The notes under the pieces are model-generated. The model was not told where the DNA came from and did no database searches. It was given only the letters and a program-made list of their open reading frames with translations. A program made the position numbers and the translations under genes. Shown one piece after another: positions 8,257 through 36,504 of a stretch of DNA of 64,000 nucleotides. Source of the DNA: Phallusia mammillata (Eukaryota). The DNA is taken from contig OZ281499.1 of the NCBI GenBank assembly GCA_965637545.1, forward strand, positions 5,394,001 through 5,458,000, given 5' to 3'. How positions within the stretch are numbered: position 1 is the stretch's first letter; each line of letters opens with the position of its first letter.

Positions 8257-8455
8257 GATTTGACTTTCGACGGGTTCACCGCTTAGCCTGTGTAGCTCAG
8301 TTGGTAGAGCGCGAGTCCCGGAAAGACTCCTGTCGTGAGTTCGAATCACATCCCAGATTAGATTTTTCTAGCCTACACCTTGCGATATGGTAAGTGCTTG
8401 GTGTCCGGCTGATTCGGTATGGCGCCTATAGGCCTGGCGTAAAGTGATCTGCCTT
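8257..8455 (+). mobile_element. tRNA-derived SINE-like element, family 1
   Basis: A box TAGCTCAGTTGGTAGAGC and B box GAGTTCGAATC; 3' body (..GGTGTCCGGCTGATTCGGT..) shared with the other copies. Confidence 0.8.
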
Positions 8456-9191: not shown

Positions 9192-12100
9192 TTACTGGAC
9201 GACAGATAGCATTTCAAGTTCGGCTTCAGAATGTATGCGAATTTTCTTCTCCCGTTCCACTTCGCTAATTTCGTCAACATCGCTGGAGAAACTTTGACGT
9301 CTTAACTAGAGGAACATAAAATAAAATTAGTTTTTTTTGTAACTGAAGAGCGCTTTGCTTGTGTTTGCGTTCTTCAATACTCAATTTGTTTATTTTTTCC
9401 CCGTTAATATTCTAACTTATTTGAATAAGAAACCATAGGTTATATTTTAACAAAACGACGTGAACTGAGGGTGCTACTTAGGCGAAATATATATTTCAAT
9501 TATCTATATATGGACTGGTTCTGTTTTTGGACACGATTTTTCATACTCAGTCATTTAGTTTTATAATTGCCTTCACCAGTGCCATAAATACAAGTTGTCT
9601 GATTTATTTGTTGAAGCACTTTCTGGTGAGCTCCTGCCACATAACGCTTTATAATACAGTGTAGCTGCAGCGCGTTTAATCATGATTCCCAATTGTGCCC
9701 TCCACTTTCTTGCGCCCAATAACATCTTAACGTTGCCCAGCTATTTCCGGCTTTGTGATTGTCCAGTGTAATCGTGTCGCTATGTGTTCTTTCACCAGGC
9801 GAAATAAACTCAACTTAACTGAACTCAAGCGTGCAGGGTCTTATTTTTGTGCATAAATATTTCCACACCATTTTTAAAACGCTTCGATAGGTTGAAAATG
9901 TTACAAATTAAAATGCAAAAAATAAAATCAATCTCACTTTGTAAAGACTTTCCCCTTTCATCCGCGCTGAAATGACAAGATAAATCGCGTATCCAGGAAT
10001 AAACAAAACAGAGCTTAGCGCCACCATGTGACAGAGAAGTTGTCCCCACACCGGGTACGTATATTTACCGTAAGCAAACGGTTTTTGTTTCACCAAAAGG
10101 TATAAAGCCATGATCTGAAAACAAAATAAAGTTATTGGCATATAAGCAGTGGTGAGATTCAAATTTTTGTCAGCCGGTTTATCACAAAAGTCATATTTTT
10201 CATCCGTTTCTGTTACAAAAAGTCATTGACGTTCCCCAGTAATGCTAACCGGTTTGCTGATCTAATAAAATTTCATGAGACGGTTCTATAGAACCGGTGC
10301 GAACCGGCTAAATCCCACCACTCCATATATTAGTAGCTAAAATCCTGCAATCAACTTTCGTTTGTGTGAAATACACATTTAGGCTTAAGGACCGCGAGCC
10401 CTCGAAATAGTGGCGAAGGGACCGTTTTGAAAAAGAAAAAGTTTGGGAACCACTGATATAAAGGATGAGTGCAAATGTTTCTTAACAGTTTAATTGCGGA
10501 TTCCTGCATTAAGTTTAAAGCAAAATATACTGCGAAAAAAGTTTATGACACAAAAAAACACATGAAATATCCGCCCACACGCAGTTTATAATTACTTTCA
10601 AATGTTTTCCCTTTGGTTTTGTGCGTTAAATTAAATTATTTTACTAAATTAGGATTGCTTTTTGCGCTGAATTGAAGTATTTCACTAAATTAGGACTATA
10701 CTACAGGAGTTTTTGCTTAATCGTCTGATGTTATGTGCAACATTTTTGTTATTTGTTCGGAACATGGCAATGATGAGATAAGAAAAGTGTAAGGCTTACT
10801 TCGGTAAATCTGTACCTAGAACTGCACTGAGCCATGAAAAGCAAAACAAATGTTATTTACTTATAATCTACCATCTGCGAATTTTAACTGTAAGTTATAA
10901 CTTAGTACTACAGAATCAAAGGATATAATCGAAGAGGTCTTTTGTACCTAAAATGGGTCTTCCATTCAAAAACAATACTTTTAACCATTCCCATTAATAA
11001 GTTAGGTAATTAAAACAACTTGAAAAAAGTCTGTTTAAATTTACATCATTTTCTCTTAAGCAATCCGACTTTAAAATATTTTTTGGAGCACGCATTTTAA
11101 TTACCTAATTTTTTTAATCTGATTGGATCGCTTTAGTAAAAGGTGGCCAACCCCTTTCTAAATTACTCAAAAATGCCTTAAATGCCTTAAATAACCCTAA
11201 AATTTGCTGGTTTTACTTACAGAGCAAGTAATAGGGGCGATAAACTTCCAGGACGTTTTAAGCCACAATTTTCCTCTTCTCCTTCCGATCATTAGTTCTA
11301 TTTCTTCCCAGTAGTTATCGAAGCCGAAAAACCAACCAATTGCCACAAATTCACACGTAACTGTTGTAAAAACGCTCCATCCAGACATTCCGTAATTATT
11401 TAAGATCTCAAAAACGTAAACACCTCCCTGTAAAATAAATCATTTCAAACTATTCTATTTGAATAAGAACTATAGTGATATCATTATAGTGGCGAAATCA
11501 ATATTATATTTTACTACTGTGCATTAGGCTACCAACAAAGCAAACTAGTTTAAGTATAAGTTCAAACTAAAAACAAAGGTTTTCATCAATACTGGCTAAA
11601 ACAGTGACTTTAAAGTAAAGTTAAGAAGAATGCATTTTAATTGGTGAAAAAAAAGTTGAGCAGAATTTGCTTGGGTCCATTACCAAGACAAAATTGGGTT
11701 GCGCATCGTTATAATGTTATGAAGAATACAATAGTGAAAAGCACGCTTGATGAATAGGAGTTTAGCATTCTGCAACTACCCCGTTATTACAGGATAACTT
11801 TACATCCATATAGGTGCGTTTTGTCACATATGCTGTAATATATATATTCATAACAAAGATTGTTTTAGAAATTTATGGAATATATGCTTAAGTATTGTGG
11901 TCGTCATGTTCTTTTGATTAAACTTTTCGTATTGGATTAGCATAGGTGTGGTCCATTGAAATACCAACATTCACAAATGGCATAAAAACACGAATTTATA
12001 AATACCTCGTCTACCATCGAAAGGCAGATAAGAAACAGAAAAGCGTAGACCACTGCTCTCGTTGTTTTATCCCATACTCTTAGCGTGGTGAAATTGTCGT

Positions 12101-15100: not shown

Positions 15101-17883
15101 GGAGGGTCGCTGTGACGTAGACAACCTAGACAAGTCAAACAACAATTGGTTGAGCTTTAATGGCGTCATATGTATCGGACTTTGATGAAAACAGCGGCAC
15201 ATTCGTACGTAAATCATAAAACGACAGGTCTATTAAATACGTAACACCAATGCAAGCCGGTCTCCCGAGCATTCCCATATGGTAAGGAGGTGGCTACGAA
15301 ATCTAATGAAATATTTGATTTGACTTTCGTCGTGGTACACCACTGAGCCCGTGCAGCTCAGTTGGTAGAGGGTCAGTTCTTTATAGGCTCCTGTCGAGGA
15401 TTCGAATCTCACCGCAGGCTAATTGTTTTTAGTTAATTACTTGTCGCATTGGAACGGCTGGAAGACAAACTTGGTTCGGTATGACCCTTTTAATAGACTG
15501 GATTATTACAACTAAGAAAAAAACTTCCGCACTAGTTCAATTTATACAGTTTTTTACAAATTGTTATTTTTTAAAACTTGCAAAAGGATTGTTCATACAC
15601 GCATATGGTTGTTGTTGGTTACAATATTGCGACATAAAATATATCACCTAGGAATGTTCGCAGTCATAAACACTACAGACTTACCTTTGCTGTCGATTTC
15701 ACACCTTTCAACATGCAGAAGTAAAACACAACCCACAGAAGCAACATGTATACGACCAGATCTTGAACTAATGCTCCAGGCTGATCAAGACTAGGGGACA
15801 GATGCAGAACTTCATTGCTATGAAACATTAAAACGAAAAACGTTTTAATAAGGCGCGGAGTTGTTATTTGGGTAATGTCCCTCTGTGAATTAAAAATGTT
15901 GCTAAAATATCTTTTTTAACCTAAGAATTCTTATAAATGTCAATACCTTTTGGTTTCAATTAAAACGAGTTTCAAAAAACATGAAATGAAAAAATCGTAA
16001 AATGTTTCACTGAAACTCACATCCCCCTATAGAACGCAACCATATGTTGGCAACCACTACGTTTTCTTTAAAGATTTCACTCTATTTGTCAAGACACTTC
16101 AGCAGACATTAACTTAAAAAATCCAAAATCCAACTTACACAAAATATTCGTTCGTAGCCGAGATTGATTTATTCACGTGATAGGTCAAATTGAAATTGGA
16201 CGTTCGGTTGATGTTGCTGGAATTAAAAGTTGTGAGATTTTTGACTCCAGCGGCCGTGACACAATGTTCCGTGTTCCAACTGTTGTCACATGTTGACCAG
16301 GGCAAGGTTGCGGAAAAACTTTTAACCAGGTATTTGGTTGTCCATACCAGCACAATGGGATAAGACAAGCTCCCGTAGAACATGATAATCCATTGCGCGA
16401 TCGGCAAACCTAAAAATATAACCAACCAGGGTTTTTTTAAGGTTTGGTTTGGGTGACCGCTAAGTAGTTTTAAGAGACCGCAAGTGTTTCATTTAAATAC
16501 CAAAAAATATCCATATTTGCTTTTTGGGAAACCGCTGGAGAAACCTTAAAAAAAAACACTGTAACCAACAACAAATATTTTAAATTTCGTGCTATGTTTT
16601 AAACTAACTTAGAGCAGATCAAAATGTTTAGTGTAATGAATGTTACGTTTTAATCACTATGTCATTACCAAAGTCAAAATAGATGTGTAATCCCTAGATG
16701 CGTAAAATATCAAGCAAATTAAGGTGTAATTGAAAATGTTGTGTTTGAAAGCCCTTTTCTTCTTTTCTTACTGCTTTTTACTGTACGACAGTCCCATCAA
16801 AGGCGTTATGCCGAATCAAGCTGCATGGTCTCCCAAGCATTCTAATATGGCAAGGCACTGGTTAGAAAAATCTAACCTGCGGTGGGATTTGAAACCACGA
16901 AAGAAGTCTTTCTGAGACTCCGGCAATGGATACTTCAGGGCTAATCCCAATATGAATGTACTGATCTTAACTGTTCAGTTTGTTAGCTTATGGTATGTTC
17001 TATTTTATGCATTGCGAAATCCTAAAGGTATTTTTTAAGTGCTGTACCTCGAAATATGGGAACGATTTTCCAACTTTGGACTGCTCCGCGTCTTACACGT
17101 TGCCCCAAAGAAGTTTCAAGAATAACTGCCGGCACAGCAATTAGAATCGCAAAAATGAAGTAGGGAATCAAAAATGCCCCTAAACAAATATTTTAAATCG
17201 TGTTGTGATAATTTAAGTTAAAAACAAAAACAAAATATAAATACTTCTGAAAAGATCATGTAACAGCATGAGTAAAAAGATTCTTATCAGCAGAATTTGA
17301 AAATCTGATGTACAAACCCGGGGGCCAAATAAGATCAACTCGTATGCAAATTAGGAACTTATATCTGTAATACAATGTTTAAATGGATTGATTTTGTCCA
17401 ATCAAAGCTTGTTCGGTTTTTGAGTTGGGTTCGCTTAGTGTGGAAAATCGTTGAAGCACAATTTCAATGAAATAAGTCCAAAAAAGCTACATAACGTTGA
17501 AACGTGGAGCGTAAAACGCGAAAAAGACAATTAGTTGATCAAATGTCAATGCGCTGCTGTCATTACCAGGCCGCAGACATTGTAAAAGGGTGATTAGGGT
17601 TACACATCATGCCAACTAAAATTGTGTTTGAGTCAAGATAACTTCAAATTCTACATCAAATGTCTAGCAACACTAAAAAGATCAACATTATGGGTTTGTA
17701 CAACAAATATAACATCATACCTCCACCGTTTTTGAAACACAAATACGGAAATCTCCAAATATTTCCAAGTCCCACCGAAGCACCGATTGTTGCAAATATA
17801 AAATCGAATGAATTTTTCCATTCTTGCCTTTTGTGCTTTGCTTCGTTATTCGTTTTCAACCCGGACAAAAATTTACCTTCCAT
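9192..17883 (-). CDS. SLC6 sodium/chloride-dependent transporter, GABA/taurine/creatine-like, 12 coding exons, ~600 aa
   Basis: Exons 5'->3': 17883-17721, 17179-17048, 16409-16139, 15817-15685, 15125-14991, 13797-13694, 13211-13118, 12945-12802, 12134-12006, 11427-11221, 10114-9938, 9305-9192 (1803 nt, phases consistent). Motifs: [88 protein letters not shown]. An exact ortholog is not assignable by eye. Confidence 0.95.
10147..10323 (+). mobile_element. MITE, CAGTGGTGGGATTCA family, copy 2 (SLC6 intron)
   Basis: Homologous to 2646-2827; flanks CATATAAG / CATATATT (6 of 8 match). Confidence 0.85.
10331..10455 (-). mobile_element. Truncated left end of the 38869-type MITE
   Basis: Reverse complement of the first ~125 bp of 38869/63278, ending GTTTGGGAACCACTG. 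Confidence 0.85.
12600..12770 (-). mobile_element. tRNA-derived SINE-like element, family 1 (SLC6 intron)
   Basis: Reverse strand reads GGGTTCGAATCCCAGCGCAGGCTAGATTTTCTGGCCAATGCCTTGCCATATG, matching the body of the 8257 copy. Boundaries approximate. Confidence 0.75.
14308..14634. mobile_element. hAT MITE (CAGGGGTGTCCAAC TIR) in an SLC6 intron
   Basis: Perfect 14-bp TIR and perfect 8-bp TSD GTCTATAT. Confidence 0.92.
15317..15490 (+). mobile_element. tRNA-derived SINE-like element, family 1 (SLC6 intron)
   Basis: CAGCTCAGTTGGTAGAG A box, GATTCGAATC B box and the same ~30-bp leader as the 8257 copy. Confidence 0.75.
16427..16561. mobile_element. 135-bp hAT MITE next to the SLC6 exon 3 acceptor
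   Basis: TIR CAGGGTTTTTTTAAGGT / ACCTTAAAAAAAAACACTG; perfect 8-bp TSD TAACCAAC. A related end fragment lies at ~40005-40081. Confidence 0.88.
16790..16945 (-). mobile_element. tRNA-derived SINE-like element, family 1 (SLC6 intron)
   Basis: Plus strand ccgaatc..atatggcaaggcactggttagaaaaatctaacctgcggtgggatttgaaacc matches the other copies. Boundaries approximate. Confidence 0.72.
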
Positions 17884-18252
17884 GTTCTTTCAGGCAACTG
17901 TTCGGTATAACACTAATCACTTGACCTGGTGCAAATTATATGATGTGATTTTGCGAGGATTTACTGTAAAAGTATGTCCTGGGGCAAGGATTATTTTTCG
18001 AAAAAGGGCTCAGCGTTAGTTGCTAATTTATTTAGCCTGCAGCTCTTGTACTAAAATTATTTAGGTAACGAAATGCTATGTATCGTCGGCAAAATACCAA
18101 AAAGTCAACTGCAACTTTAGAAACATGACACACGGACCTCACAAGCAGTTCATTCACATCAAAACTGCCAGTTAACCAATTATAATGAACGTATTTCTGC
18201 TGCAGACGTCTCAATATTCGGTGTTGTCATAAAGGGCATTGATGATGACAAC

Positions 18253-22583: not shown

Positions 22584-25500
22584 TCAAGTTTGTGTACAGG
22601 GTGCATTGCATGTTACTGGACATTGTGACTCCATTTCTGTTGCATATGTTGGGTCCGTGCAAAGATGCTGCAGTTGTTGACATCTTTCTGTTGATTCATC
22701 CACACAACCTAGGGGAAAAGTAAAGATGTTTCATAGCAAGCATTCATATGATTTAGGAGCAGGAATTTGTAATGTATAGTAAAAAATGTTTCCTTTCTTG
22801 CCACAAAAAACAGTTTAACATGTTGAATGCTTACCTCGAGGAGTTATTGGACTGCTTGTAGTTGTTACTGCAAACAAATTTTGATTGGTTAGAAATACAG
22901 TTAAACGTGTTTTTGGCAATTAGTGATAATCTGCATGCATTTAGTGTGTTACCTTGGCAGAGTCCACAACTGAGTTTACAGTTTTGTTTCAGTAACGTAA
23001 CTGTTTTACATAAGTCTCCATTGCGAACACGTTGACAGGATGGGAACTTGTCCTCACATAGTCCATTATCTAAAGAAATAAAAAGTGAATATTTGATATC
23101 CAAAAACTGGTAAGAAGTCATTTACATGTCTACATAACATGCGTTAAATTATCCAGTTTTTAGCCTTTTTTTAAGTGTAACTTCTTGACACGTGTGTACT
23201 CTTTTTCTTTTGACTTATGTGGACTTACCAGTAGTTGTGGTGATAACTGTTGTAGTTGTAGGCCTTCTGGTTGGTGGTGTTGTCAGCCCCTGCTGACCTG
23301 GAAAAAATACTAACATTCTAAATTCTTGTCAAATTGACTTTTCCTATTCCACAAAGTAGTAATTATGGGTCCCCTTCCCTGAAGGGGACACATATTGTTT
23401 TTGTCTGTATTTTTTCTCTTATTTTGTTTTTTTCGGTCTAACGCGGATTTGTTCCCACGTTTTGGTCAAGAAGATATGGTTCAAACTCTTTCAAATTTAC
23501 ACACATTATAGATTTTGGTCTAAAGATGTTCCATGTGAGTTTTGACCCCGTTTGATCCCTCGGTTCACCCATGGCCCCCCAAAACGTGAAATTTTTAAAA
23601 CAGCTATACTTGTTTAAGCAGATGATTCTGGAGTTTCATACTTTTTTGATTGGTACATTGCAGCGTATTTCAAAGTACTTTGTAACTTGAAGTTGTATAT
23701 ATCCACTTTCACCCCTTTACCCCCAAATATTTGTTTGTTTGTTCACATGTTAATGAGGTCAGAAATACAAGACTTAACCTGCTGAAATTTTAAACAGCTG
23801 TGGATATGGTGCTCCTTGTTGGCTGTTAAAAATGTCAGTGCAATCGGCTCAGTAATTGCTCTTACAGCCCCAAATATATATGTTTTTACATGCTGTCTTT
23901 TGTCAAATTTGTGCTCGCTCAGTGCACAGCTGACGCAATGGGAGTGATTGACGATAGTGGCGCATGGAAAAATGCCTCTGCTTCACGCATGAATGCAGTC
24001 GTCACTTGACCATTTTTTCTCACTGGTTGGAATTGAGACGTTAAGATGTTAGTTATATTGCACTGTAAACGTTAATGTAGGTCAACTTATTCGTGTTTCG
24101 AATCGCAGAGCGACAACGCAACACGATTTGTTACACCTGTGTAACGTGACTTCTCAAACTGAAAGCGTTAATAAAACTGTTTCAGAACAGGTTTTGGACA
24201 TAAAATGCCCAGCTAAGCAATCGTTTTCAGGGAACGCTATGTACAGATTAAAAATCATAAACAAATAAAGGGCTATTAAGGAAAAAAATGTTGAAACTTT
24301 GTTAAAAGTTTATATAGTTGGACTCATCCATTTTCCACCTCGTGAAAACAACGCGCAACACTATTCCAGTTTAACAATGATTGTGCCCTATTTTTACTGT
24401 TACCAAATCGCGTATGCACATGTGTGGGGACCCATTAGATTATGCTTGCAGAAACAATTATGTTATAAAATGCCAGGAAAAAGATAGGGACCCAATGAAA
24501 TGTAGGTGCCAAATATATATCCATTATAAATATAGTAAATGGTATATGTGATACATCGTTAAATATGATGTAGTACAGGGGTGGCCAACCCCCGGCTCGC
24601 GAGCCGCATGCGGCTCTTTGCCTGGTGTTATGTGGCTCTTACGTTGTTGCGGAAGTTTGGGGCCACTGCGGATTTTTTGGTTAGTTTGTGGCTATGACAT
24701 TTTGCTTTTAAACAAACTTACTATCGGTCTGGCCACAAACGTTGCCTTGAAACTGGAACGGTATTAGACAAATGGCTTGATTATGATGGCACATATTCAA
24801 TTGTTGAATGATGACTGATTCCTCATTGTTTCGTTCAATGCAAATAAAACACAAAGCAACAGCAATATTTACAACAACGTGTTCAAAAATTAATAATGTT
24901 TCAATCCGTTGTTTTTCGGGTTATGACCAACGTTATTTTATGGGCAGTCTGTCTCATGGTCGTGGGTTTGAGTTGAGCGATTGTTTGTGTTGAATACATT
25001 AGTGACGTCGCAATAAATTTAGTTTTACCACCTTGCATTTTTCGACCCCTACTTTTGGGCGCACACATTAGATGAAAGTACCGCAAAGTTCAAAGCAGGG
25101 AAAATCTTTTAAGTTTTTGTCAACTTAGCCTTCAAAATGGCAGAGAAAAAAAAGATTTCAGTACCTCACCAGAAATGAATCTCACCGCCCGTTACTGATA
25201 GTAAGATAAAGAAGGGATATTTTAATTTTATGTTCGTTAAAATGAGAGTTTGTGTGTAAGACACTGACAGATCATTCATTGTTAAAAATGACTGGCCTGT
25301 GGTCTGTACAAGTCAAATTGTGTCATTATTATGTTTGTGTGCGACATTTAGAATAAATCTGGCTAATACAGGTTGTTCATGTTGGCTTATGTGTATAATG
25401 TGGCTCTTTGTGGTAACACAATAACAAATGTGGCTCTTAGGCATTGACCGGTTGGCCACCCCTGATGTAGTATATATAAACTGGCAATATATAGGAAAAC

Positions 25501-25716
25501 CACTATTCTAGTTTGGTAATTATAATTAGGACACTTTTTATGTAGTAGGGTGTTGCTTTGTGGGGCAGAATACACTTGTGTCAAACTTACTTAGTAATCT
25601 TGCTCGAATGTTACATGAATTGCATGACACTGGACAGTTGATCTGTAGTCTCTCTTGCAATTGACATATTCTGTTGCCTTTAAACCTTTCGCACAATCTA
25701 GAAATGTCTTTACAAT
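22584..25716 (-). CDS. ShK domains 8-10 and terminal exons
   Basis: 25716-25591 (CPVSCNSC), linker 23297-23229, 23069-22953 (CKLSCGLC), 22708-22584 (CPVTCNAPCTQT*). There is no TM or GPI segment at the C-terminus. Confidence 0.9.
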
Positions 25717-28700
25717 CTGAAACAAGAAAACTGATTAGAACAGCAGTTAATCTATTTAACTGCTACTAATTCTTTTCTCATTATTTTATGTAAACAGTAA
25801 GATATTTGGGATTTATAATTCTGACATAAGTAAATAGATTATTTGTTTGGGATAATCAGCTGTAGTGGGTTGTGAAATACATCTTTATACAAACAAAAGA
25901 AAGCTTTAATTTTAATGGTTTAAATGTAACAAACAAAAGAAAGATTTTAATTATAATTTATCCTACCTGAAGGCGTGGTTGCTGGAACTATTGTTGTTGT
26001 GAGTAGTTCTGTGAATGTTATGGTTGTTGTAGCTTCAGTCATTGTCAATGTTTCTGTCATGGTTGTTACTGGTATTTCTTCAGTTGTTGTAGCAGCCGCA
26101 GCAACGACAGCAGCCAGTGTTTCTGTTGTAAGGGGTGCTTTTGTTGTAGTTACTGGTACTTCTGTAGTTGTTGTAGCAGCTGTTGTTTCTGTTTTAACAA
26201 GTTCTGTTGTTGTCATTGTTGTTGCCGCTGTTGTTTGTGTTGGAACATTTTCTGTAGTTGTCATTGTTGTTGCAGCTGTTGTTTCTGTGGTAATAGGCTC
26301 TGTTGTGACAGTTGTTACTTCTATAGATGGTGGAGTAGGTTCTGTGGTAGCAGGTGGAACTGCTACCTCTCTTCCTGTTACGCTGGCGCTGTAAAAGTGG
26401 AATTTTCATTTCTTCAAAAACTTGTTATTAAGAGAACAGTGATCTTTTGTTATTTCCAAGATTAGTCCTTTATCTAAGAATAGTCTTTTTTGTCCCAATT
26501 TTAATGTCAAATGCAAGTTTCTAAATTTTGTCCACAAACCATTTTTTTAACAAGCATTAGCTTCGTAAAATACAGAAAAATAATGATTTTTCACCTTATT
26601 GGTTGGCACATCTTGCATGTAAATGAACATGTTTTTACGAGAAGTTCTTTGTAACTTTCATCGGAACAGAAGTGATCAAGATCCTCGCATCTATCATATG
26701 TGTCACCACACACTAAAATAATAAAGTAGAATTGCAAAAAACCTAAACTTTTGTATTTTATACAACACAAATATGTGATTTTTTAAAATCAAAAAAAGTA
26801 TCACACTTGACTAACATCTTTACATTTTAGCAGCAACAAGAATATTCAATGTAAATATGATGGCCAACATTTAAATTAATGAGAAAGTATTAGTTTGGAC
26901 ACTGTTCCTGAGAATGTTTTTAATATTAATGTTTTACCCAAAACGTAAGGACAAGCAAAAAGACATTGTCTTGAAGTTACAGTTAGGAAGAGGATAAAAA
27001 ACAGCTCAACATTTAACGCTACCAACAACAAGAAAGCAAACCTGTATGTTGAGGTGGTGATTGTAGTGACCACGGACTTCTTTTCTTGTCTGCCATTGCA
27101 GTAACAGCAGCTATATATGATGTTCCCGGAAGCAATCCTCTCATGATGTGTTCATAGTTGTGTTGAGAAAGAGAGTTATCATACATCACAGTCATCGTTT
27201 CATTGCCATTTACAGGACTTAAACTGATTTCAAACTCAGATACTGTGAAAGATACTTGTGGCATTTTCCATGTTACTGTCAGTGTGGTAGTTGGGTTTCT
27301 TGTCCTTTGGTGTACTTCAACTTGATATGGCATTGGAGGAGCTAAATTGAGACATATTGGCCATAACAGGCATTTGTTTACCCAGTTGTATCAGTTTTTA
27401 GGCTGCTGTTTTTTGAAGAAAAATCCTAAAAATGTACTTTCAGTTGCATTCACTGTCATTTTGTGGGCTTAACCTCAGTTTTTAGATGTTGACTTATACA
27501 CGACTTAATGTGATCGGTTTAGTTGTGTTTTTTACTTCTTTTAAGTAATGTGCAGTCAACTTAAAAAAAAGCAATGGTTAACTTACATTTGTTAAATTCA
27601 TTTTGTGCAAAACTTTCAACAATTGCTATTATTATTAATGCGACTTTACTTTGTTTGCGATCCCGCTTTTCAAAATTATTTTTCTGCTAAAACAGGAAAA
27701 AACCACAAATATACCTATTTGCACTTCATTCGAGGGCAGTGAAGATTGTGCTTCAGAAGTTCCTCGCTTGGCAATGACAACTGCTGAATAGGTCTCCCCA
27801 TACATAAGCCCAGAAACACCATGGACATACTGCTGGTTCGAAACTAGTATCTCATCTCTCATCGGCAAAGAAAGCATTCGTATAGGACTGACGACAATCT
27901 CAAATTCGGTGGTGGTGTCTCCCGGTGGCATTTCCCATGTAACTATTAGGGAGTTTTCTGGTCCAGAAGTCAGCTGGACATTGTATGGAGTTGCTACCGC
28001 AGCTATGGAAAAAGTTGCATGGGTTATATTGGAAAAGGTGTCTACTCAACTTTTGCATTTAAAGGTGTTTTCAAAAAAACAACTATTCAAGGTATTAGTT
28101 AAAACCAATAGCGATAAAATCCTTGGTGAAAACAGAACCAGTCAGTTTATGTAAAGGAGCATATATTATGCCTATGTGGCATCATCAGTTTCTCATTCAA
28201 ATAGAATCAGATTCTATAATAGAAAAAGGCAAACATTGATCGTCAGTTTCAGCCTTGCTGTTGATGGTTTTGATCCATTACTTCAACTTTCATTTTCACC
28301 AACTTTTCAAGGTTTAGTTACGTTTTTGGATGGTACATCAATACTTTAGGTGCCACGCTGTTTAATAGATGCACTTTTTTGGATTTATTTTTTACACCTT
28401 GATAAATGGCAAAAGTTGTACTGCATCTGATTGTCAAGCAATGATTTGCCACTTAGAAATTGTATCTTTTAAATGGTATTGCTTGCACTTTATATACAAT
28501 GTTATCTTGCAATGAAAAAATCTGAATGCTACCTGGTTCATTTCTGCCACATCGTCCACAAGTTTTGTTGCAAAGCGTTGTAATATGGTCATAGTCAGGA
28601 TTTTGACAATATACTGCTACCTCCTGGCAATTCTGAAGTTTGTCTGTGCATTCTATTTTGACAATAAACAATTAAATTGATTCGTTGATTAGTCCACTAT

Positions 28701-31700
28701 CGATTACAGAATTTTTGATTTCTTTCTAATAGCTGATATTTTATGTAAATTTTTGAGTATCTTTATGTTTATTTTTTTTTATCTCGTATGCAAAGGGATT
28801 AAATTCCAATTTTAGCCATTTGTTAACAAAATCATCTGGTTAATTGCATAATTCGGTTGGTAGCATAAAAAGTGAATACCCAGATTTGTGTCATACACAA
28901 AAGTTTAGTTTTGTTAGTAAGTCAATTTATTTAGTGATGCACTGAACTGAGTATTCTGTAGACTAAGGCCAAATCTAAAACTCCCGTTCTTTTGAATGCT
29001 TTTAACTGGACCTTGTGTTGTCAATGCAAGTAAACTCATTTATGATTGTCCAAAATGGCTTTAGCAACATGTAAGCTGAATAAAATGCCTAAAATTTTGC
29101 TCCCAATTTGGTTTAATTTTTGTGAATGTAATAATTGGTTATGAGTTTTTTAATGATTGATCATACTGTTTTAGTCGAAAAAACTGCCTAATTTTTCAGT
29201 GCATCACTACAATTGTTGTCTAAAACAGTTTTGGAGCATGCATGTTAAAAAATGCTGACAGTTAGGAGCACCAAACACCCCAATTAATTTTTTTTATAAT
29301 GCTGTTTTTGTGCACCAAGGTAACTGAGTTAACTAGCAGTAAACTCTGTCGGTATCTTCTTGTCTATGCCATTAAGTCTGACATTACCCCAAACTTGCTG
29401 ACGTGCCTTATTTATGTTTCATACCCAAATAAATACCCTTTCATTAAAGTACCCATGCACAACCAGTATGCGTTTTCCTTCTTAATATGTTCACACCCAG
29501 TCTCTACACATGCTGTTAAATGTAACTAATATTTTACCATTTGTTCCTTGGTCTGTGTTGTCTTGGCTGAATAAAAACAAATGTCTTGTTACATTTTTTT
29601 TTGTTACTTTCATCCTTTTTACAGCAATTTGGAAATAAATGATTTTTTAAAGCAAGAAAAGATTTGGTTGCTTAATAGGATGATAAGGTGTTAGTATTAA
29701 ATCAGTGTATTTGCAGATTTTTTTAATTTTTTTGGTCCTAAAATATAATTTATATCATTTTTCCAATCCAAATTCAACTGTAATTGTATCTGTAAGCCTT
29801 CTTTTTTATGTCTAATATGTTTTTTTGGTAAGATATATTATGATATCCTAAAATGTTAGTTTAGAAGACATCACACACATGCAAATTGCATATTGTTCTG
29901 AAAAGAACATATATCCAGGGATGCCATAATTTAAGGCTAAAATTGGGGGCAACTAGAAATAATTTATGATTTGGTCGCAAAACGAAAGGTGTTTTTGTTT
30001 TAATTTTTTTTTTTTTTTGACATTGACATGCGAACGTTCATTTTTTTAAGTAAAATAACTACCCAGTTTGCCCAAACTTGGTTTAAATGTGCAAGTAAAA
30101 AAAGGTCATTTCAATCATTTTATGGGCAATCGTGTTTCTGAGGCCCAATTCAATAACGTAGCAAATCTTGGGAAAAAATATGGTATGGCAACCTTACATA
30201 TATGATCTGTTCAGATTTCAAAATGTGGCACCCAAACTGCTACAAAATGCTTTAAGTGTAGAAGCCTTGGATAGTGATTTTTTCACATCCAACCGGTTAG
30301 TGTTACCAGTCTCAAGTAGTAAATTTTATTACGAGAAAATATGCAAGGCAAAGTAATCAGTGAAACAACGAAAATGGTTGATCAAAAGAAATACTTGTGT
30401 TGGTTAAAAGCACTGTAAATTTTGGCATCATGCAACTTTTTACACATGCATTTCTTTTGGAACACAAAGATGCATTTGTAAATCATGTTAAAGAAATAAA
30501 TAGGTTTGGCAGAAGTAAAAAGCGAAATGCAACCAAAAGTGTTAGTTCAGGTTTACTTTGAAAACTGACAGAAGACAATGAAAGGTTTAACAATCTAAAT
30601 GCCTGAAAACATGCAAAAGCAATATTTCTAAGGCTATCAGTAGAAAAGTAATGTCTGTGAATGTCAGGTTTTGATAGCTGGACATTCTGTGGATTGCATG
30701 CATTTTTTGCAACATGCCGATTCAATGCAATCAATACCAAGCTGTTATGTATTACCTTCTTCCTTCACAGAAGTTGCATGTTTTTTTGCAACCAGCCATT
30801 AAACTGGCATATGATGCATCGTTACACAAACTGTCAATATCCTTGCAATAGCTGTGAATGTCCACACACTCTGAAAACCAATGGAAAATGGTGTTTAATT
30901 AATTACCACATTACTGTAACAAATTGATAACAAGTCAAATGAAGCAGCAGAGTGATAAAACTTTGAAAAAATGTTTGTTTTTTACAATAAACATTTATAC
31001 TGTTTGTTAGTAAATAATGTTTCAAAGCCATTAACTTTAAGGCTTGTCAAATGTGATTTTTGTACAGACGACTCATTTCTAGCTTTTATTAGTTGGAAAA
31101 ATCAACAACACCTCACTTTGCACACATAACTAATAAACACTTCTTACCTATATCAGGAGTAGTAGTGGGAACTTCAGTTGTTGTAGTGGTTGTCGTTGTG
31201 GTTGGTGTTGTGGTTGGTGTTGTTGTAGGTGTTGTTGTAGGTGTTGTTGTAGGTGTTGTTGTAGGTGTTGTTGTGGGTGGTGCAGTTGTTCTGGGAGGCG
31301 TTGTAGGAGCATTTGTAACTAAAAAATATAAGCAGTTGTGCAATCCATTGAAAAATTACAATCATAACAATGAACCAAAATATGTTTGGTGCCTAAACTA
31401 TTAGGATTTTATCAATACATGACATTACATTGACCGTTGTAAATTTCATGAAAACTAAAACGTTTTTTATTCCAACATGATACTATCCCTACCTAAAACC
31501 ACAAACTATTTCTAAAATTCTTATTTCGTTTTGTTTGGTTATTGACCGCATACACCTTTGTTTGGTGAAACTCACCTGTTTGGGTTGTTGTTGGTTGACA
31601 TATTCCGCAAGTTTTCTCGCATACACTTGCTAGAGTCTGATTTGAAATGAATGAATCACAAGATGTAATTCCAATTGCCTGTCTGCACAAGGCTTCGCCC

Positions 31701-34700
31701 AATCCGTCTTTGCATTCATTTGGTTTTGCTACACAAACACGAAGATATTACTATTAACGTTTCAACAATTGATCCGAACAAACAACATGGTGGTAACAGA
31801 ATAGTTGTCACAACAAAACAAAAAGTTTGTCAAGGTGTACCAGTTGTTGTTGCTATTGTTGTTGTAGTTGTGGCTGTTGTTGTAGGAGTTGTTGTTGGAA
31901 GATATGCGAGGAAAGGTTCAGGAATTGGATCCGCACAGAAGTTGCAAGTACGTCGACAGTACAAATATAGATCATTGTATCTGCTTGGCCTAGAGCAAAT
32001 TTCCCGAATTCGTGGACATGTGGGATACTCATCAACACACATTGCTGGAAAAGACAAAGTTTATTGTTATATAAGCACATACAACAGGAAAAAACATCTA
32101 TAGAGTAATTTGTGCCTGATTTTTCGTGACAAACATTTCAATGTAACACATAAATGTCTTTTCTACATACAAACAATTCTTGTTTATATCAGGTCTAACA
32201 ACCACTCAGAATCTATGAAAACTGAATTTGTTATTAATCAGTATCTTTAGTTGCAAGAAATTCTGATCCTTACTTATTGGATATGAGAGAACTGGAAGAG
32301 TTGTAGTAGTGGCTGTTGTTGGAATAGTAGTTACAGTGGTGGTGGATACTGGATCAACTGTTTCGGTGCAGGTGTTGCAAGACTTTTTGCATATTGCAGA
32401 TAAGGCGACACCTCGAATAATGTCTTCACAGGAGGCCAAAGATATTGCTCTCTCACAAACAGAGTCACTTAAATCGTTCTTGCATTTAGGAGGTGGCTTC
32501 GGTTTTCCTGGTTCAGTTTCAGTACCTAAATCAACATTGTTAAATAAGTTGCCAATAACTCTTTCCATCCTAACTGATACACTGAAGTCACCCAGTTAGC
32601 AAAAAAAGAGTATAGTATGTGACTTTTTGGGGCGATAAACCATGTCAAAACTCTGTTAATGTTTTTCACAAAACAGAAATACAAAATTCAGACAAAGTAA
32701 TCAAACAATAAAAAAACCTTTGAACTAACACAGTTTGAATTAATATCACTATTTTTGGGATAGCTTTCCCATTAATTGACTAACATTTAGGACACCGTAA
32801 TGTTGAAGTTTAAGTGAAATGAAAACTAACCCTTGCAAACTCCACATGTAATGGGGCAACTTCGTTTAACCACTGGTATTGATTCACATGAAGATCTTCG
32901 CACTTTGCAGATGTCGGCATATTGCTCATTACAATCCACTTTTTCTTGTCCTTAAAAAATAACTGTAATCTGTCTTCCCGAACTGCAGCTTATAATTCAC
33001 AAAATATTACACACAATCAAATGTATATCAGTTCTCATAATACATTTAAGTTGAAAATATCTTTCCTATTACCAATCAGGCTAACCTTTTAGGTCTTTTG
33101 ACTTACAAACACAATTGATTTTGTTTAGCCTAATGCAAATATCTACTGTACCAAAACACAGTGTTTTTAATGAGGTAGCTGGTGCTGAATAATTATATAC
33201 ACTCCTTAGTATGTAGTATGTGCATAAATCAATGCTTTTTAGCGACATATATTTGATCTTCATAAGAAATGATTTTAACCCGGAAATAAACATTTCCCAA
33301 ATTTGTGCATAAATCTGTTTAAAGTTGTGTCTAATTTTTAATGTATTTTTAGGCGATGAAACAAAATAAGTTCTATCTTAACAAATGATAGGATGAATAT
33401 ACATTTGGATTAAGCTCAATTGTTTAACATACCAGGTTCAGGACAAGCAGCTGTATTACAGTCTTTCTCTTCTCTGGGTTTTTCACCGCAGAGTTCACTG
33501 GGAGCAGGTCGATCATCATGATACAAGCAGAAGCGCTCACGATTTCTTGTGCCCTTACCACAAGTCTTTGTGCATTTACTCCATTGTCCCCAGGGTGACA
33601 GCTTCGGTTCTGAAATTACACAAATGTGAACAATTCATTAACAAACAGGTAAGTTGTTGAATCATTTATTAAAAAAAACATCAGTATTTGCAAAATATTT
33701 CCTAAAAAACATTTTAATGTTCACAACTGTTTGGGTCAGGAAATTCTCACATAAAGTCAAATGAAACTTTGGACAAGCTGTTTTGAAAAAATCACTTACT
33801 TGGAAAATGATTTAAATATCTAGGTATGGTTCTTAAAAGTATGATATTTTTTTTCCATTATATCACTGATGGAACATCAGTATTTGCAAAATATTTCCTA
33901 ACATTAACTTTATTATTCACAACCGTTTGGGTCGGAAAATTGTGAAAAAACGCCTAAATCTACTACTCAACTGTTTTCTTCTGAGAAGTAGCAGTTGGGT
34001 TCAGCAAAACTGTTGTAGCAGCATCCTTGTGCCTCACAAGACTGTCTTGTTACTCCGGGAAATGCACATTGTGCTCTATCAAAAATATTGAGGAGATTAT
34101 TTTATGCCTTCAAATACAGTTGCAGAAAAATTGGGCACAAATGCTTTTTCGATGATCAACAATATTTTATTTCAGACTGAAAATAGTTTTACTTGAACAT
34201 TTGTACAATTTAATAGTAAACAGTGCATTTTCACTTTTTTAATTTTTGAACTCAATCACCAGGCATACCTTCAAGTCAAACTTAACTTAAATATGGTTTG
34301 TTGTACTTACCTTACACCAAGAAGTACAGCACAATTTTGAGCAGTTACATGCTCTAAAAAAACAAAAAACATAATTAGAGTTAGATAAATAAGGTTACTG
34401 CATTGATTTTGTTAGTTATGTCAACTTTTGTAGTTTATTTGTGTATTCCTTTAAAGAGCAAATTGAAGGCATAACGAAATGCACAGCTTTGGAGTTCATT
34501 AAATTGCATAATAAGGTGTCAAGGTGTATAACTTATTAATTTTAGTTTAAAATCCATGTGTTTTATTCAATGCTGGGATTCAGCCGGTTCGCACCGGTTC
34601 TATAGAATCGTCTCACGAAATTTTATGAGATCAGCGAACCGGTTAGCATTACCGAGGACTGTCAATGGACTTTTTGTAACAGAACCGGCTGAAAAGTATG

Positions 34701-36504
34701 ACTTTTGTCTTTTGTGATAGAACAGGCTGACAAAAAAAATTGTGTCTCACCACTAGTTTTATTGCAAGAATGAAGCCATTTCATGCAAAACCGGTCGGTC
34801 CCGATGGCCCAAACTGACCGGATAAACGTGTCAAGTGAAATATAACGAAGGTTCAATCAAAACTGCACGCGCCTCGGGGTCCAGTGCGGTGTGCGCGAGA
34901 ATTGCTAATCCGAGCTAATCTCACGGTTAGTTAATTGCGAGATCCTTCCGTTTATATGTAAAGACGAACTTTAAGTGGCGGTGCTTCGATGGGTGTGGTG
35001 TAAGTTTAAGTGGAAATTTGATAGCATAGGACTGGGCACCACATCCCGCAATTGTGGGGAATCTAAAACTAAGCATTGGCGTGGCGTTAAATGCGATCAA
35101 TTTGGGGTGACATATCACGCTTGTAATAGACGCAGGCGATAACTTCAAATGACTTTTTTTCGAGGGATCTAGTTGCACGAATAAACTGATGTAATTTGAG
35201 ATTTCGGAGTATTTTAGCGTGTTGTCCTGCCTTTGCACGGTCGTTCTTGTAAACTGAAGATCGCTTTTGTTATATGCCACTGAATTTGAAATTTATTGGA
35301 AAAAGCAAATTTTTTGCGATGTGATAAAGATCGTTGATGTATGCTTGTCTTACTTCAGGCCACGCATACTGTTGCACAATGGTGTTTGATGTAAAAATTC
35401 TTTGCAGCAAAATTTTACTCCAAAGCGATTGGTAGACGACAAAACTCCGGGTATTTTGAAAAAAAGTTTTTTAGTCCAAAATATAAGACTATGTTTGAAA
35501 GTCGAAATCCAAGCATAAATTATAAATCTCGCGCTAGATTTCTATGAGGAAATTTAGTAGCCGTTTTTTTTATCTTTAGCCAATATGTAAAGGCACTCCC
35601 ACAAGTTGTAACTATGGCAACAACCAACCAACCAGATATTGCAGGTAATGACATGAGCATGTGCCGAAACGTTTGAATAAGAAAGCATGTCGCTTTTTAG
35701 GTCTATTTGGGCCGTTAGATTCGTTATTAAACTTATGAACAGATTCGTGCATGATGTCTTTTACGTCTTTTGGGGGCCACTATTTTCGTCATTAAACTTC
35801 TGAACAGATCCTTAGTTTTCCAAACCAACCAATCAATCAAATATTACAGTTTCTCCCGACTTTTAAAAATGCACAGCATATAGCTACGTGGTCCAAGTAA
35901 TACATCATTGTCGCATTGAATCACGAAACGTAAAAATAAACACACGTGTCTATGTTTGTTTACAACATGCAATCGACGTCATCTCTCGCCCGCAAGTCTA
36001 CAATGACACGCATTTTATGACGTTTGGTCATGTGACAACGACACGTTCTCAGGGTCGTAAAAATTTTACGCGTATCAGTTTATTGCGCGACCGCTTTTCG
36101 AAAGTTTTGAATTACCGTTGTCGTTAAATTTTACCGCGTTTGACGGAACTACACCAATGGCACCTTAGCTTATTCTATGCATAATAGCGGTTTGTCCATA
36201 ATTTCTATGACTTTATGTGAACAGTGAAAAATATTATCACCTTAAAATTATTTTTTGTCAGCGCATAGTTATGCATAACATTTTGCCGGGTTGAAAAAAA
36301 AACTACCCTATATCACCTTGTAGCAAATTGTAATATCTTCCTTTCGGTCAACTTCTATATGTTTATGCCATAAAATGCCTAAAATTGAAACTTTTTTAAC
36401 GTAGCCTATGCATGTTATACAATTTCATACGACTTACTTGTAACAAAAACTGCACAAAACGCCATCAGTTTGAAAATCGTCACGATGAAATCCATTTTCT
36501 CCAT
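22584..36504 (-). CDS. Secreted mosaic mucin-like protein: signal peptide - trefoil - TSP1 - 10 ShK domains with Thr-rich linkers and 2 FN3 domains, ~1055 aa
   Basis: Exons 5'->3': 36504-36438, 34353-34311, 34075-33972, 33609-33433, 32950-32831, 32573-32274, 32044-31841, 31728-31576, 31318-31148, 30870-30756, 29566-29538, 28652-28533, 28002-27715, 27341-27042, 26712-26595, 26388-25967, 25716-25591, 23297-23229, 23069-22953, 22708-22584 (3168 nt, all GT-AG, phases consistent). The least certain points are the 29-nt exon and the acceptor at 32573. Confidence 0.85.
23355..23720 (+). repeat. Interspersed repeat of unclassified family; related fragment at ~5030-5130
   Basis: Shared segment ttcaaa(c/t)ttacaca..gtga(a/g)ttttgacccc..cggttcac in both places. 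Boundaries approximate. Confidence 0.5.
24576..25464. mobile_element. 889-bp hAT deletion derivative (CAGGGGTGGCCAACC TIR) in a ShK gene intron
   Basis: Perfect 15-bp TIR, perfect 8-bp TSD ATGTAGTA and subterminal TGTGGCTCTT repeats; no intact transposase ORF. Confidence 0.92.
25967..26712 (-). CDS. ShK domain 7 plus large Thr-rich mucin exon
   Basis: 26712-26595 (CGDTYDRC..CSFTCKMC) ends in phase 2. 26388-25967 is a 422-nt Thr/Glu/Ala-rich exon with ~16-aa repeats (TETTAATTMTTTENVP). Confidence 0.9.
27042..28652 (-). CDS. ShK domain 6 plus two fibronectin type III exons
   Basis: 28652-28533 ends CNKTCGRC. 28002-27715 reads PYNVQLT..SLIVTWEMP..GLMYGETYSAVVIA. 27341-27042 reads PYQVEV..TLTVTWKMP..GLLPGTSYIAAVTA. 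All are phase 1-1. Confidence 0.9.
30756..32950 (-). CDS. ShK domains 1-5 with Thr/Pro-rich linkers
   Basis: Six-Cys modules ending C-x3-C-x2-C at 32950-32831 (CPITCGVC), 32573-32274 (CKKSCNTC), 32044-31841 (CRRTCNFC), 31728-31576 (CEKTCGIC) and 30870-30756 (CKKTCNFC). Confidence 0.9.
31148..31318 (-). repeat. Coding 12-bp tandem repeat encoding (PTTT)n mucin-like linker
   Basis: Plus strand shows gttgttgtaggt / gttgtggttggt units; the minus-strand translation is PTTTPTTTPTTT...TTTTTT. Confidence 0.95.
33433..33609 (-). CDS. Thrombospondin type-1 repeat exon
   Basis: LSPWGQWSKCTKTCGKGTRNRERFC..C..C..C carries the WxxWxxC, CxxTCG and RxR motifs; phase 1-1. Confidence 0.92.
33678..33942 (+). 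repeat. Intronic ~70-bp direct duplication between the trefoil and TSP1 exons
   Basis: aacatcagtatttgcaaaatatttccta..ttcacaac(t/c)gtttgggtc occurs twice. Confidence 0.8.
33972..34353 (-). CDS. Trefoil (P-type) domain split over two exons
   Basis: QNCAVLLGV|RAQCAFPGVTRQSCEAQGCCYNSFAEPNCYF gives C-x9-C-x9-C-x4-CC-x8-C, the trefoil cysteine pattern with a shortened last loop. Confidence 0.85.
34568..34755 (-). mobile_element. MITE, CAGTGGTGGGATTCA family, copy 3 (ShK gene intron 1)
   Basis: Reverse-oriented homolog with perfect 8-bp TSD GTTTTATT (34560-34567 / 34756-34763). Confidence 0.87.
36438..36504 (-). CDS. Signal-peptide exon of the ShK mosaic gene
   Basis: MEKMDFIVTIFKLMAFCAVFVT is followed by a phase-1 GTAAGT donor. 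It joins 34353 to give ..VTKHVTA-QNC, with a V-x-A cleavage pattern. Confidence 0.8.

Follow-up and report, generated by a model that had tools for sequence, protein, structure and literature searches.

The subject of this work is a gene on the minus strand of a 64,000-nucleotide stretch of DNA from the ascidian Phallusia mammillata (assembly GCA_965637545.1, contig OZ281499.1, positions 5,394,001 to 5,458,000; hereafter, the window, in which positions are counted from the first letter). The gene runs from an ATG at 36504 to a TGA at 22586-22584, so that its bounds are 22584-36504. Overall, it is best explained (with a probability of roughly 0.55) as an intact, lineage-restricted tunicate gene that would encode a secreted, unanchored glycoprotein of mucus or matrix. 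The following components can be differentiated in its predicted product: (i) a signal peptide; (ii) a trefoil domain; (iii) a thrombospondin type 1 repeat (TSP1); (iv) ten ShK modules, each with six cysteines; (v) two fibronectin type III (FN3) domains; and (vi) Thr/Pro-rich linkers. All of them had been claimed in an original prediction made from the letters of the window, and all of them were recovered within these bounds, on the minus strand, by family scans and a pattern scan.

Gene Structure and Domain Composition

Enumeration of splice sites gives 19 firm exons, and all introns are of the GT-AG type. Phase 1-1 exons, the signature of shuffled extracellular modules, make up 15 of the 19. 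No stop occurs in the exon bodies or in the split codons, as computed from phases, lengths and split codons, and the window is free of N runs. A continuation of the gene beyond 22584 or before 36504 was considered and rejected, since a separate SLC6 gene lies downstream and the 27 kb upstream hold no recognizable coding segment. The domain families were assigned through Pfam scans of minus-strand stop-free segments, one exon segment each, which were compared exon by exon with cut-offs of 21 bits for PF00088, 21.6 bits for PF00090, 25 bits for PF00041 and 20.9 bits for PF01549.

Exon 1 (36438..36504) opens with the ATG at 36504, about 120 nt downstream of a TATA-like box, encodes a signal-peptide-like hydrophobic N-terminus and ends at a phase-1 donor (gtaagt). 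It is the sole hydrophobic exon, with a 19-residue Kyte-Doolittle mean near 2. The hydropathy of the exons reveals neither a transmembrane segment nor a hydrophobic C-terminal tail, in agreement with the original claim that transmembrane and glycosylphosphatidylinositol anchors are absent.

The trefoil (P) domain is split between two exons. Exon 2 (34311..34353; 43 nt; phase 1 in, 2 out; acceptor tttttag, donor gtaagt) contains the end of the signal region, with a V-x-A type site, and the first trefoil cysteine; its phase-2 join to exon 3 gives the Cys1-x9-Cys2 spacing with R-x-x-C. Exon 3 (33972..34075; phase 2 in, 1 out; weak gttgag donor) contains the remainder of the domain, with five cysteines and a GCCY motif, and scores 40.5 bits against PF00088 by itself. 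This division explains why the Pfam profile is matched on exon 3 only from its position 8 onwards. The trefoil combines a score above the cut-off with six cysteines and the GCC[FWY] core, and its nearest solved structures are TFF2/spasmolytic polypeptide (2.2e-7), TFF1 and TFF3.

The TSP1 repeat occupies exon 4 (33433..33609) and scores 40.3 bits against PF00090. It has six cysteines as well as the WxxW and CxxTCxxG motifs, which in repeats of this type serve for C-mannosylation and O-fucosylation, respectively. Among solved structures, the closest is the TSR of thrombospondin-1 (1.6e-12), followed by properdin and F-spondin. The two FN3 domains are encoded by exon 12 (FN3-1; 27715..28002; 31.0 bits against PF00041) and exon 13 (FN3-2; 27042..27341; 99 aa; 39.4 bits); they are 38% identical to each other, and the nearest solved structure to FN3-2 in the PDB is fibronectin (6e-12).

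The Ten ShK Modules and Their Linkers

A pattern scan of the window locates ten six-cysteine modules, all of them on the minus strand and within 22587-32951, and finds no further six-cysteine module elsewhere on that strand. The only other pattern match in the window, on the plus strand at 30748-30855, is antisense to the ShK5 exon and was rejected. Six of the ten modules score above the PF01549 cut-off: ShK1 in exon 5 (32831..32950; phase 1-1; 21.4 bits); ShK3 in exon 7 (31841..32044; 29.1 bits), followed by a Pro/Thr-rich tail with a Thr-codon array; ShK5 in exon 10 (30756..30870; 28.0 bits), which ends at a phase-2 donor; ShK6 in exon 11 (28533..28652; 29.7 bits); ShK9 in exon 18 (22953..23069; 24.9 bits); and ShK10 in exon 19 (22584..22708; 32.3 bits), which includes the TGA, three residues past the last cysteine. 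The other four are ShK2 in exon 6 (32274..32525), with a Thr-rich tail; ShK4 in exon 8 (31576..31728), with a strong donor (CAGgtgagt); ShK7 in exon 14 (26595..26712), with a phase-2 donor; and ShK8 in exon 16 (25591..25716), for which an alternative phase-1 donor at 25615 would give an exon 8 codons shorter.

When the modules are trimmed, nine of the ten match ShK at E<=1. In all ten, the six cysteines are in register, and the module ends in C-x3-C-x2-C in nine cases and in C-x3-C-x3-C in the last one. Only these six cysteines are invariant in the alignment of the ten modules, whose pairwise identity is 21-40%. ShK2 and ShK4 form a divergent, long-loop subtype that hhalign nevertheless matches to the profile of the other eight modules with 88% probability (E 2.8e-6). 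Against the PDB, the ten-module profile retrieves ShKT-fold entries only: aurelin (5.6e-7, the best match), sea-anemone OspTx2, a ShTK domain protein, hookworm Acan1 and AcK1, the ShK domain of MMP23, and BgK. An AlphaFold2 model of ShK2 has three short helices and a predicted local distance difference test score (pLDDT) of 68.7.

The modules are joined by mucin-like linkers. Three linker exons, tandemly repeated and 41-62% Thr, can be distinguished: (i) exon 9 (31148..31318), made of PTTT repeats (62% Thr, 23% Pro), whose array has a 12-nt period, 7.1 copies and 95% matches; (ii) exon 15 (25967..26388; phase 2 in, 1 out), with 41% Thr accompanied by Ala and Glu in 16-residue repeats, that is, a 48-nt period in 2.9 copies; and (iii) exon 17 (23229..23297), a short Thr/Pro linker with 50% Thr and a strong donor (CTGgtaagt). 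Pro/Thr/Ser-rich tandem repeats together with a signal peptide make the product mucin-like in the broad sense, with O-glycosylation as a prediction.

The cysteines add up to 72 (6 in the trefoil, 6 in the TSP1 repeat and 60 in the ShK modules), and none is unpaired in the mature protein. No exon segment matches the VWD, C8, TIL or cystine-knot domains of Pfam. Since such domains and unpaired cysteines are both absent, the formation of a covalent polymer is not expected.

The original remark on open reading frames (ORFs) is largely correct. According to it, the list of ORFs showed only fragments of the gene, without the signal, trefoil, TSP1 and several ShK exons; among ORFs of at least 40 aa beginning with ATG, GTG or TTG, the trefoil, TSP1, ShK1, ShK5 and ShK10 exons are indeed missing, but the signal exon is contained in a 53-aa TTG ORF.

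Relatives and Novelty of the Architecture

The FN3-2 exon (99 aa) was used as the query of an exhaustive search through 1.84 billion proteins, in a library of some 15 billion proteins clustered at 50%. This search covers one domain only, fast-evolving orthologs may fall below its threshold, and cluster representatives may be fragments. It returned 68 matches at E<=1e-3, the best of which (P0001) has eight repeats that together score 170 bits, with an identity of about 36%. Named matches include, in Ciona intestinalis, a fibronectin-like protein (XP_078495875.1) and a receptor-type tyrosine phosphatase eta-like protein (XP_078481033.1), as well as H2ZLG0 of Ciona savignyi and a fibronectin-like protein of Clavelina lepadiformis; weaker matches come from sea urchin, hemichordate, amphioxus, vertebrates and others. 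The nearest relatives of FN3-2 are, then, the FN3 units of ascidian fibronectin-like proteins and of an R3-type receptor phosphatase, which fits the tunicate setting proposed from the start for this protein. The FN3-2 exon can be aligned over its full length, at 37% identity and with coincident unit boundaries, to residues 486-583 of the Ciona receptor-type phosphatase (P0005). This suggests that the FN3 exons may have been shuffled from an array like that of the phosphatase.

None of the 72 proteins compared contains the six-cysteine ShK pattern or a match to a hidden Markov model of the window's own modules, and the Pfam architectures of the top matches are FN3-only or FN3 plus phosphatase. 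No detectable relative of FN3-2 combined with ShK modules thus appears in the clustered library, in which the window's own product is not on record either. Word searches with the FN3-1 and ShK9 segments, among proteins of 0.55-1.75 times the query length only, gave no match at E<=1e-3; the 120-aa ORF that covers ShK2 has no exact counterpart on record; and a scan of metagenome contigs with FN3-2 gave 299 pattern matches, 0 of which were confirmed. The literature on ShK/ShKT in combination with trefoil, thrombospondin or FN3 domains, or in tunicates, offered no description of this mosaic.

The original prediction regarded the architecture as possibly undescribed. Within the limits of these searches the exact domain combination is unmatched, but the principles behind it are already known, both that of ShK modules with O-glycosylated linkers (PMC2563036) and that of the tunicate mosaic matrix, given the TSP1/ShKT mosaics of the Oikopleura house (PMC3390340).

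Proposed Nature and Function of the Protein

The gene would have been assembled by the shuffling of phase 1-1 module exons. Its product would be a monomeric secreted glycoprotein of about 1,040 residues in which the signal peptide, the trefoil and the TSP1 repeat are followed by five ShKT modules interleaved with Thr/Pro linkers, a sixth ShKT module, the two FN3 domains and, finally, four ShKT modules with two further linkers. Judging from what is known of these families, the Thr/Pro exons probably give rise to densely O-glycosylated, extended, water-holding segments. Between them, the ShKT modules would act as protease-resistant knots of three disulfides that offer binding surfaces, as in the ShK/SXC mucins of nematodes. 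The N-terminal trefoil may bind glycans carried by other glycoproteins of the mucus or matrix, in the manner of TFF peptides, while the TSP1 and FN3 domains may add contacts with the matrix or with cell surfaces. The protein could belong to a secreted layer, be it the pharyngeal or gut mucus or the tunic, as a non-covalent cross-linker or as part of its coat. A non-covalent component is proposed instead of a gel-forming mucin because the polymerizing VWD/cystine-knot domains are lacking and no cysteine is spare; a toxin is not envisaged either. Lineage-specific mosaic secreted proteins are common in tunicates.

Several points weigh against this reading. First, the micro-exon that would bridge ShK5 and ShK6 is a candidate only, so "20 exons, one gene" is to be taken as likely. 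Second, PF01549 stays below its cut-off in three of the ten modules (ShK7, 19.4 bits; ShK8, 20.5 bits; ShK4, 13.7 bits) and does not match ShK2. The Pfam check that accompanied the original prediction, when run exon by exon, is passed by the trefoil, the TSP1 repeat, both FN3 domains and six ShK modules, but not by those three, and ShK2 is assigned through profile comparison only. Third, Foldseek found no match in the PDB for the ShK2 model, a result that is uninformative for a tiny domain with a pLDDT of about 69. Fourth, neither an ortholog nor an identical architecture was found in the exhaustive search, for which the FN3-2 exon was the only query; because no ortholog was found, conservation cannot support function. 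Fifth, the glycosylation, the glycan binding and the tissue of action are predictions drawn from family knowledge. Sixth, aurelin, which heads the PDB matches of the ShK profile, is an antimicrobial peptide, which leaves room for a bioactive role.

Alternative Explanations

The most serious alternative, possible though doubtful, is a structural protein of the cell matrix or tunic, of the class of Ciona Epi-1 or the oikosins, in which the main role would fall to TSP1 and FN3, with the ShK and Thr-rich parts serving as spacers. In its favor, TSP1 and FN3 are typical modules of matrices, the FN3 exons find their nearest counterparts in ascidian fibronectin-like proteins and receptor phosphatases, and two tunicate precedents can be cited: Ciona Epi-1, a tunicate-specific protein with signal peptide and trefoils that is needed for the surface properties of the tunic, and the Oikopleura house proteins that carry TSP1 and ShKT. 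Nevertheless, modules of the TSP1/FN3 type are a minority of the protein compared with ShK modules and linkers, and the likeness to Epi-1 is one of description. Sequence alone does not separate a tunic protein from a mucus protein.

A role in mucosal defence, which the original prediction put forward as possible, must be considered unlikely. Here the ShK array itself would be the active part of the protein, and the ShKT modules, displayed or released, would target ion channels or microbes. The ShKT fold does include channel blockers and the antimicrobial aurelin (the best solved match, E 5.6e-7), and ten copies per secreted protein would lead to a high local concentration. But a Lys followed by Phe, Tyr or Trp in the Cys3-Cys4 loop, the Lys-aromatic dyad, occurs in 0 of the 10 modules, and no dibasic processing sites flank any of them, for which reason a toxin polyprotein precursor was also rejected. 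Of the two marks of a K+-channel toxin, the functional dyad and the small released peptide, neither was found. Moreover, the modules are so divergent, with the cysteines alone invariant, that they point to a scaffold and not to a conserved pharmacophore. Comparable modules without the dyad, those of the Toxocara mucins Tc-MUC-1 to -4 and of a limpet mucus protein that bears ShKT, are judged non-toxic (PMC7333891). Since both the dyad and the flanking processing sites are absent, a structural role in mucus or matrix is likelier than defence. Of the mucus scaffold displaying an array of ShK domains that was originally envisaged, a mucin-like scaffold punctuated by ShK knots is retained as the most reasonable reading, but the defensive part is unsupported.

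Another improbable alternative is that there are two tandem genes, an upstream one with the signal peptide, trefoil, TSP1 and ShK1-5, and a downstream one with ShK6, the two FN3 domains and ShK7-10. It arises from the interval between ShK5 and ShK6 (28653..30755, minus strand). The sole ShK5 donor that keeps the sixth cysteine is in phase 2 (30756), while the sole acceptor before ShK6 is in phase 1 (28652). Because exon 10 ends in phase 2 and exon 11 begins in phase 1, a small phase 2 to phase 1 exon is needed in this 2.1-kb gap if there is a single gene. Two candidates with good splice contexts are available: 29566-29538, which would give a product of 1039 aa, and 30633-30557, which would give one of 1055 aa. 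However, about 60 unfiltered, phase-compatible open AG..GT stretches arise by chance in this intron and, for that reason, neither candidate was adopted. The phase-consistent frame of 20 exons and 1055 aa of the original prediction is, accordingly, upheld in its 19 firm exons and, exactly, in its bounds, but its twentieth exon is a candidate and its length is reached only via 30633-30557. An assembly problem at this junction is possible.

Besides the phase mismatch and the candidate status of the bridging exon, two genes would agree with the fact that the frame stops at once after exon 10 if the ShK5 donor is not used, and with an AATAAA about 420 nt downstream. Yet AATAAA is common in this AT-rich DNA, and the ShK7 exon has the same layout, with a phase-2 donor, and is joined to a phase-2 exon, the second mucin exon, 206 nt away. 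Furthermore, a scan for first exons that open with ATG, encode a signal-like hydrophobic stretch and end at a phase-1 donor recovers exon 1 cleanly but finds none in the gap. In the absence of such a first exon, a second gene of extracellular disulfide modules would be without a secretion signal, which is unlikely. On splice logic alone, exons 1-19 probably belong to a single gene.

Finally, it is very unlikely that this is a gene copy without expression or in decay, with an open frame retained only recently: an annotated counterpart or identical ORF is not on record and one junction does not close without a candidate exon, but there are 19 firm exons with intact frames and canonical splice sites, and 72 of 72 module cysteines in register, and intact frames and cysteines in modules that are only 21-40% identical argue for long-term constraint.

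Significance

If expressed, the gene would show, in a chordate relative, a mucin-like backbone with a ShKT array of unusual size, and would link the ShK-mucin design of nematodes with trefoil-based mucus biology and with the secreted mosaic matrix proteins of tunicates. In any case, the locus is a clean example of class 1-1 exon shuffling, whose FN3 units share repeat boundaries with the array of an ascidian receptor phosphatase. A more ambitious view, quite unlikely as matters stand, is that this would be the first recognized member of a tunicate-specific "ShKT-array mucin" class, namely, a trefoil-anchored, O-glycosylated scaffold that presents ten divergent knots in the feeding mucus or tunic, the knots having a binding role of their own or an aurelin-like antimicrobial one, beyond that of spacers. 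The finding does not open a long-standing question, and the function cannot be assigned from sequence alone.

Other Features of the Window

The repeats inside the gene are the Thr-codon arrays and one intronic duplicate of 85 nt, a direct repeat with 80% identity (33677-33761 and 33873-33957) whose two copies lie in the intron between trefoil and TSP1. Intron 1 holds a 121-codon stop-free stretch (34930-35292, minus strand) in which no Pfam family exceeds its threshold. Two Val/Gly-rich ORFs of the plus strand, 25975-26394 (139 aa) and 31093-31404 (103 aa), mirror the Thr-codon arrays in antisense and are not genes.

Directly downstream, on the same strand, is the gene of an SLC6 (sodium:neurotransmitter symporter) protein, with SNF exons from 17889 down to 9911; positions 1-48 of the SNF profile correspond to 17659-17889, and positions 469-522 to 9911-10222. 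The plus strand carries two exons of a Ser/Thr protein kinase catalytic domain at 3407-3637 and 5093-5353 (Pkinase, 39.5 and 17.7 bits) which, by eye, look like the C-terminal kinase domain of a ribosomal S6 kinase. A tRNA-Ser with anticodon GGA was found at 8285-8360 (plus strand) by both ARAGORN and Rfam (30.8 bits, against a cut-off of 29 bits); it may represent a tRNA-derived element instead of a functional gene. In the approximately 27 kb upstream (37000-64000), no recognizable protein-coding segment was found among the 13 long stop-free stretches scanned.

Comparison with Known Systems

Different groups of known proteins share part of this design. ShK-type toxins and aurelin have the same six-cysteine pattern and match the profile, but the modules described here are embedded in a large protein, with no processing sites at their flanks and no Lys-aromatic dyad. 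Gel-forming mucins of the MUC2/MUC5 type are also secreted proteins with long Thr/Pro-rich tandem repeats; unlike them, the Phallusia protein has no VWD, C8, TIL or cystine-knot domain and no unpaired cysteine, and ends three residues past the last cysteine of ShK10.

The trefoil provides a second point of contact, since the solved structures nearest to its exon are those of the vertebrate trefoil factors TFF2, TFF1 and TFF3. In frog integumentary mucins, trefoil domains are found together with Thr-rich repeats. In contrast to the trefoil factors and to these frog mucins, the present protein has a single trefoil, without the seventh, dimerizing cysteine and with Asn in the usual Trp position before the last cysteine, and it bears ShK, TSP1 and FN3 domains in addition.

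Within the tunicates, two systems are comparable, both by description. Ciona Epi-1, which is specific to tunicates, has a signal peptide and P-type trefoil domains; its gene has multiple exons, and the protein is tied to the surface properties of the tunic (bioRxiv 10.1101/2024.09.30.615758). The present protein resembles it in being a tunicate protein with signal peptide and trefoil and in having a multi-exon gene but differs from it in that Epi-1 is described with trefoil domains only and appeared cytosolic (bioRxiv 10.1101/2024.09.30.615758). Epi-1 was not among the matches of any search. The oikosins of the Oikopleura house are likewise secreted, heavily glycosylated mosaics of a filter-feeding structure, and the house proteome includes mosaics that bear TSP1 and ShKT (PMC3390340). 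Tunicate origin and the TSP1 and ShKT repertoire are shared; that study describes neither this combination of domains nor a ten-fold ShK array (PMC3390340).

A further parallel is offered by the ShK/SXC mucins of nematodes. Both MUC-1 to -5 of Toxocara canis and the PHAT proteins of the pharyngeal gland of Caenorhabditis elegans are secreted and have ShK modules separated by O-glycosylated Ser/Thr-rich tracts; mucins of this kind coat a surface or, like one of the PHAT proteins in the pharynx, line a lumen (PMC2563036). Like them, the Phallusia protein has a signal peptide, several six-cysteine ShK modules that lack the dyad, Ser/Thr-rich stretches and no anchor. But the proteins of nematodes are of much smaller size, with 1-4 ShK modules, lack trefoil, TSP1 and FN3 domains and belong to a different phylum, and the sequence relationship shown is limited to the ShK fold. 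Hence, the mosaic protein would work like the nematode ShK mucins but is not a member of their family, as it carries a trefoil, a TSP1 repeat and FN3 domains.

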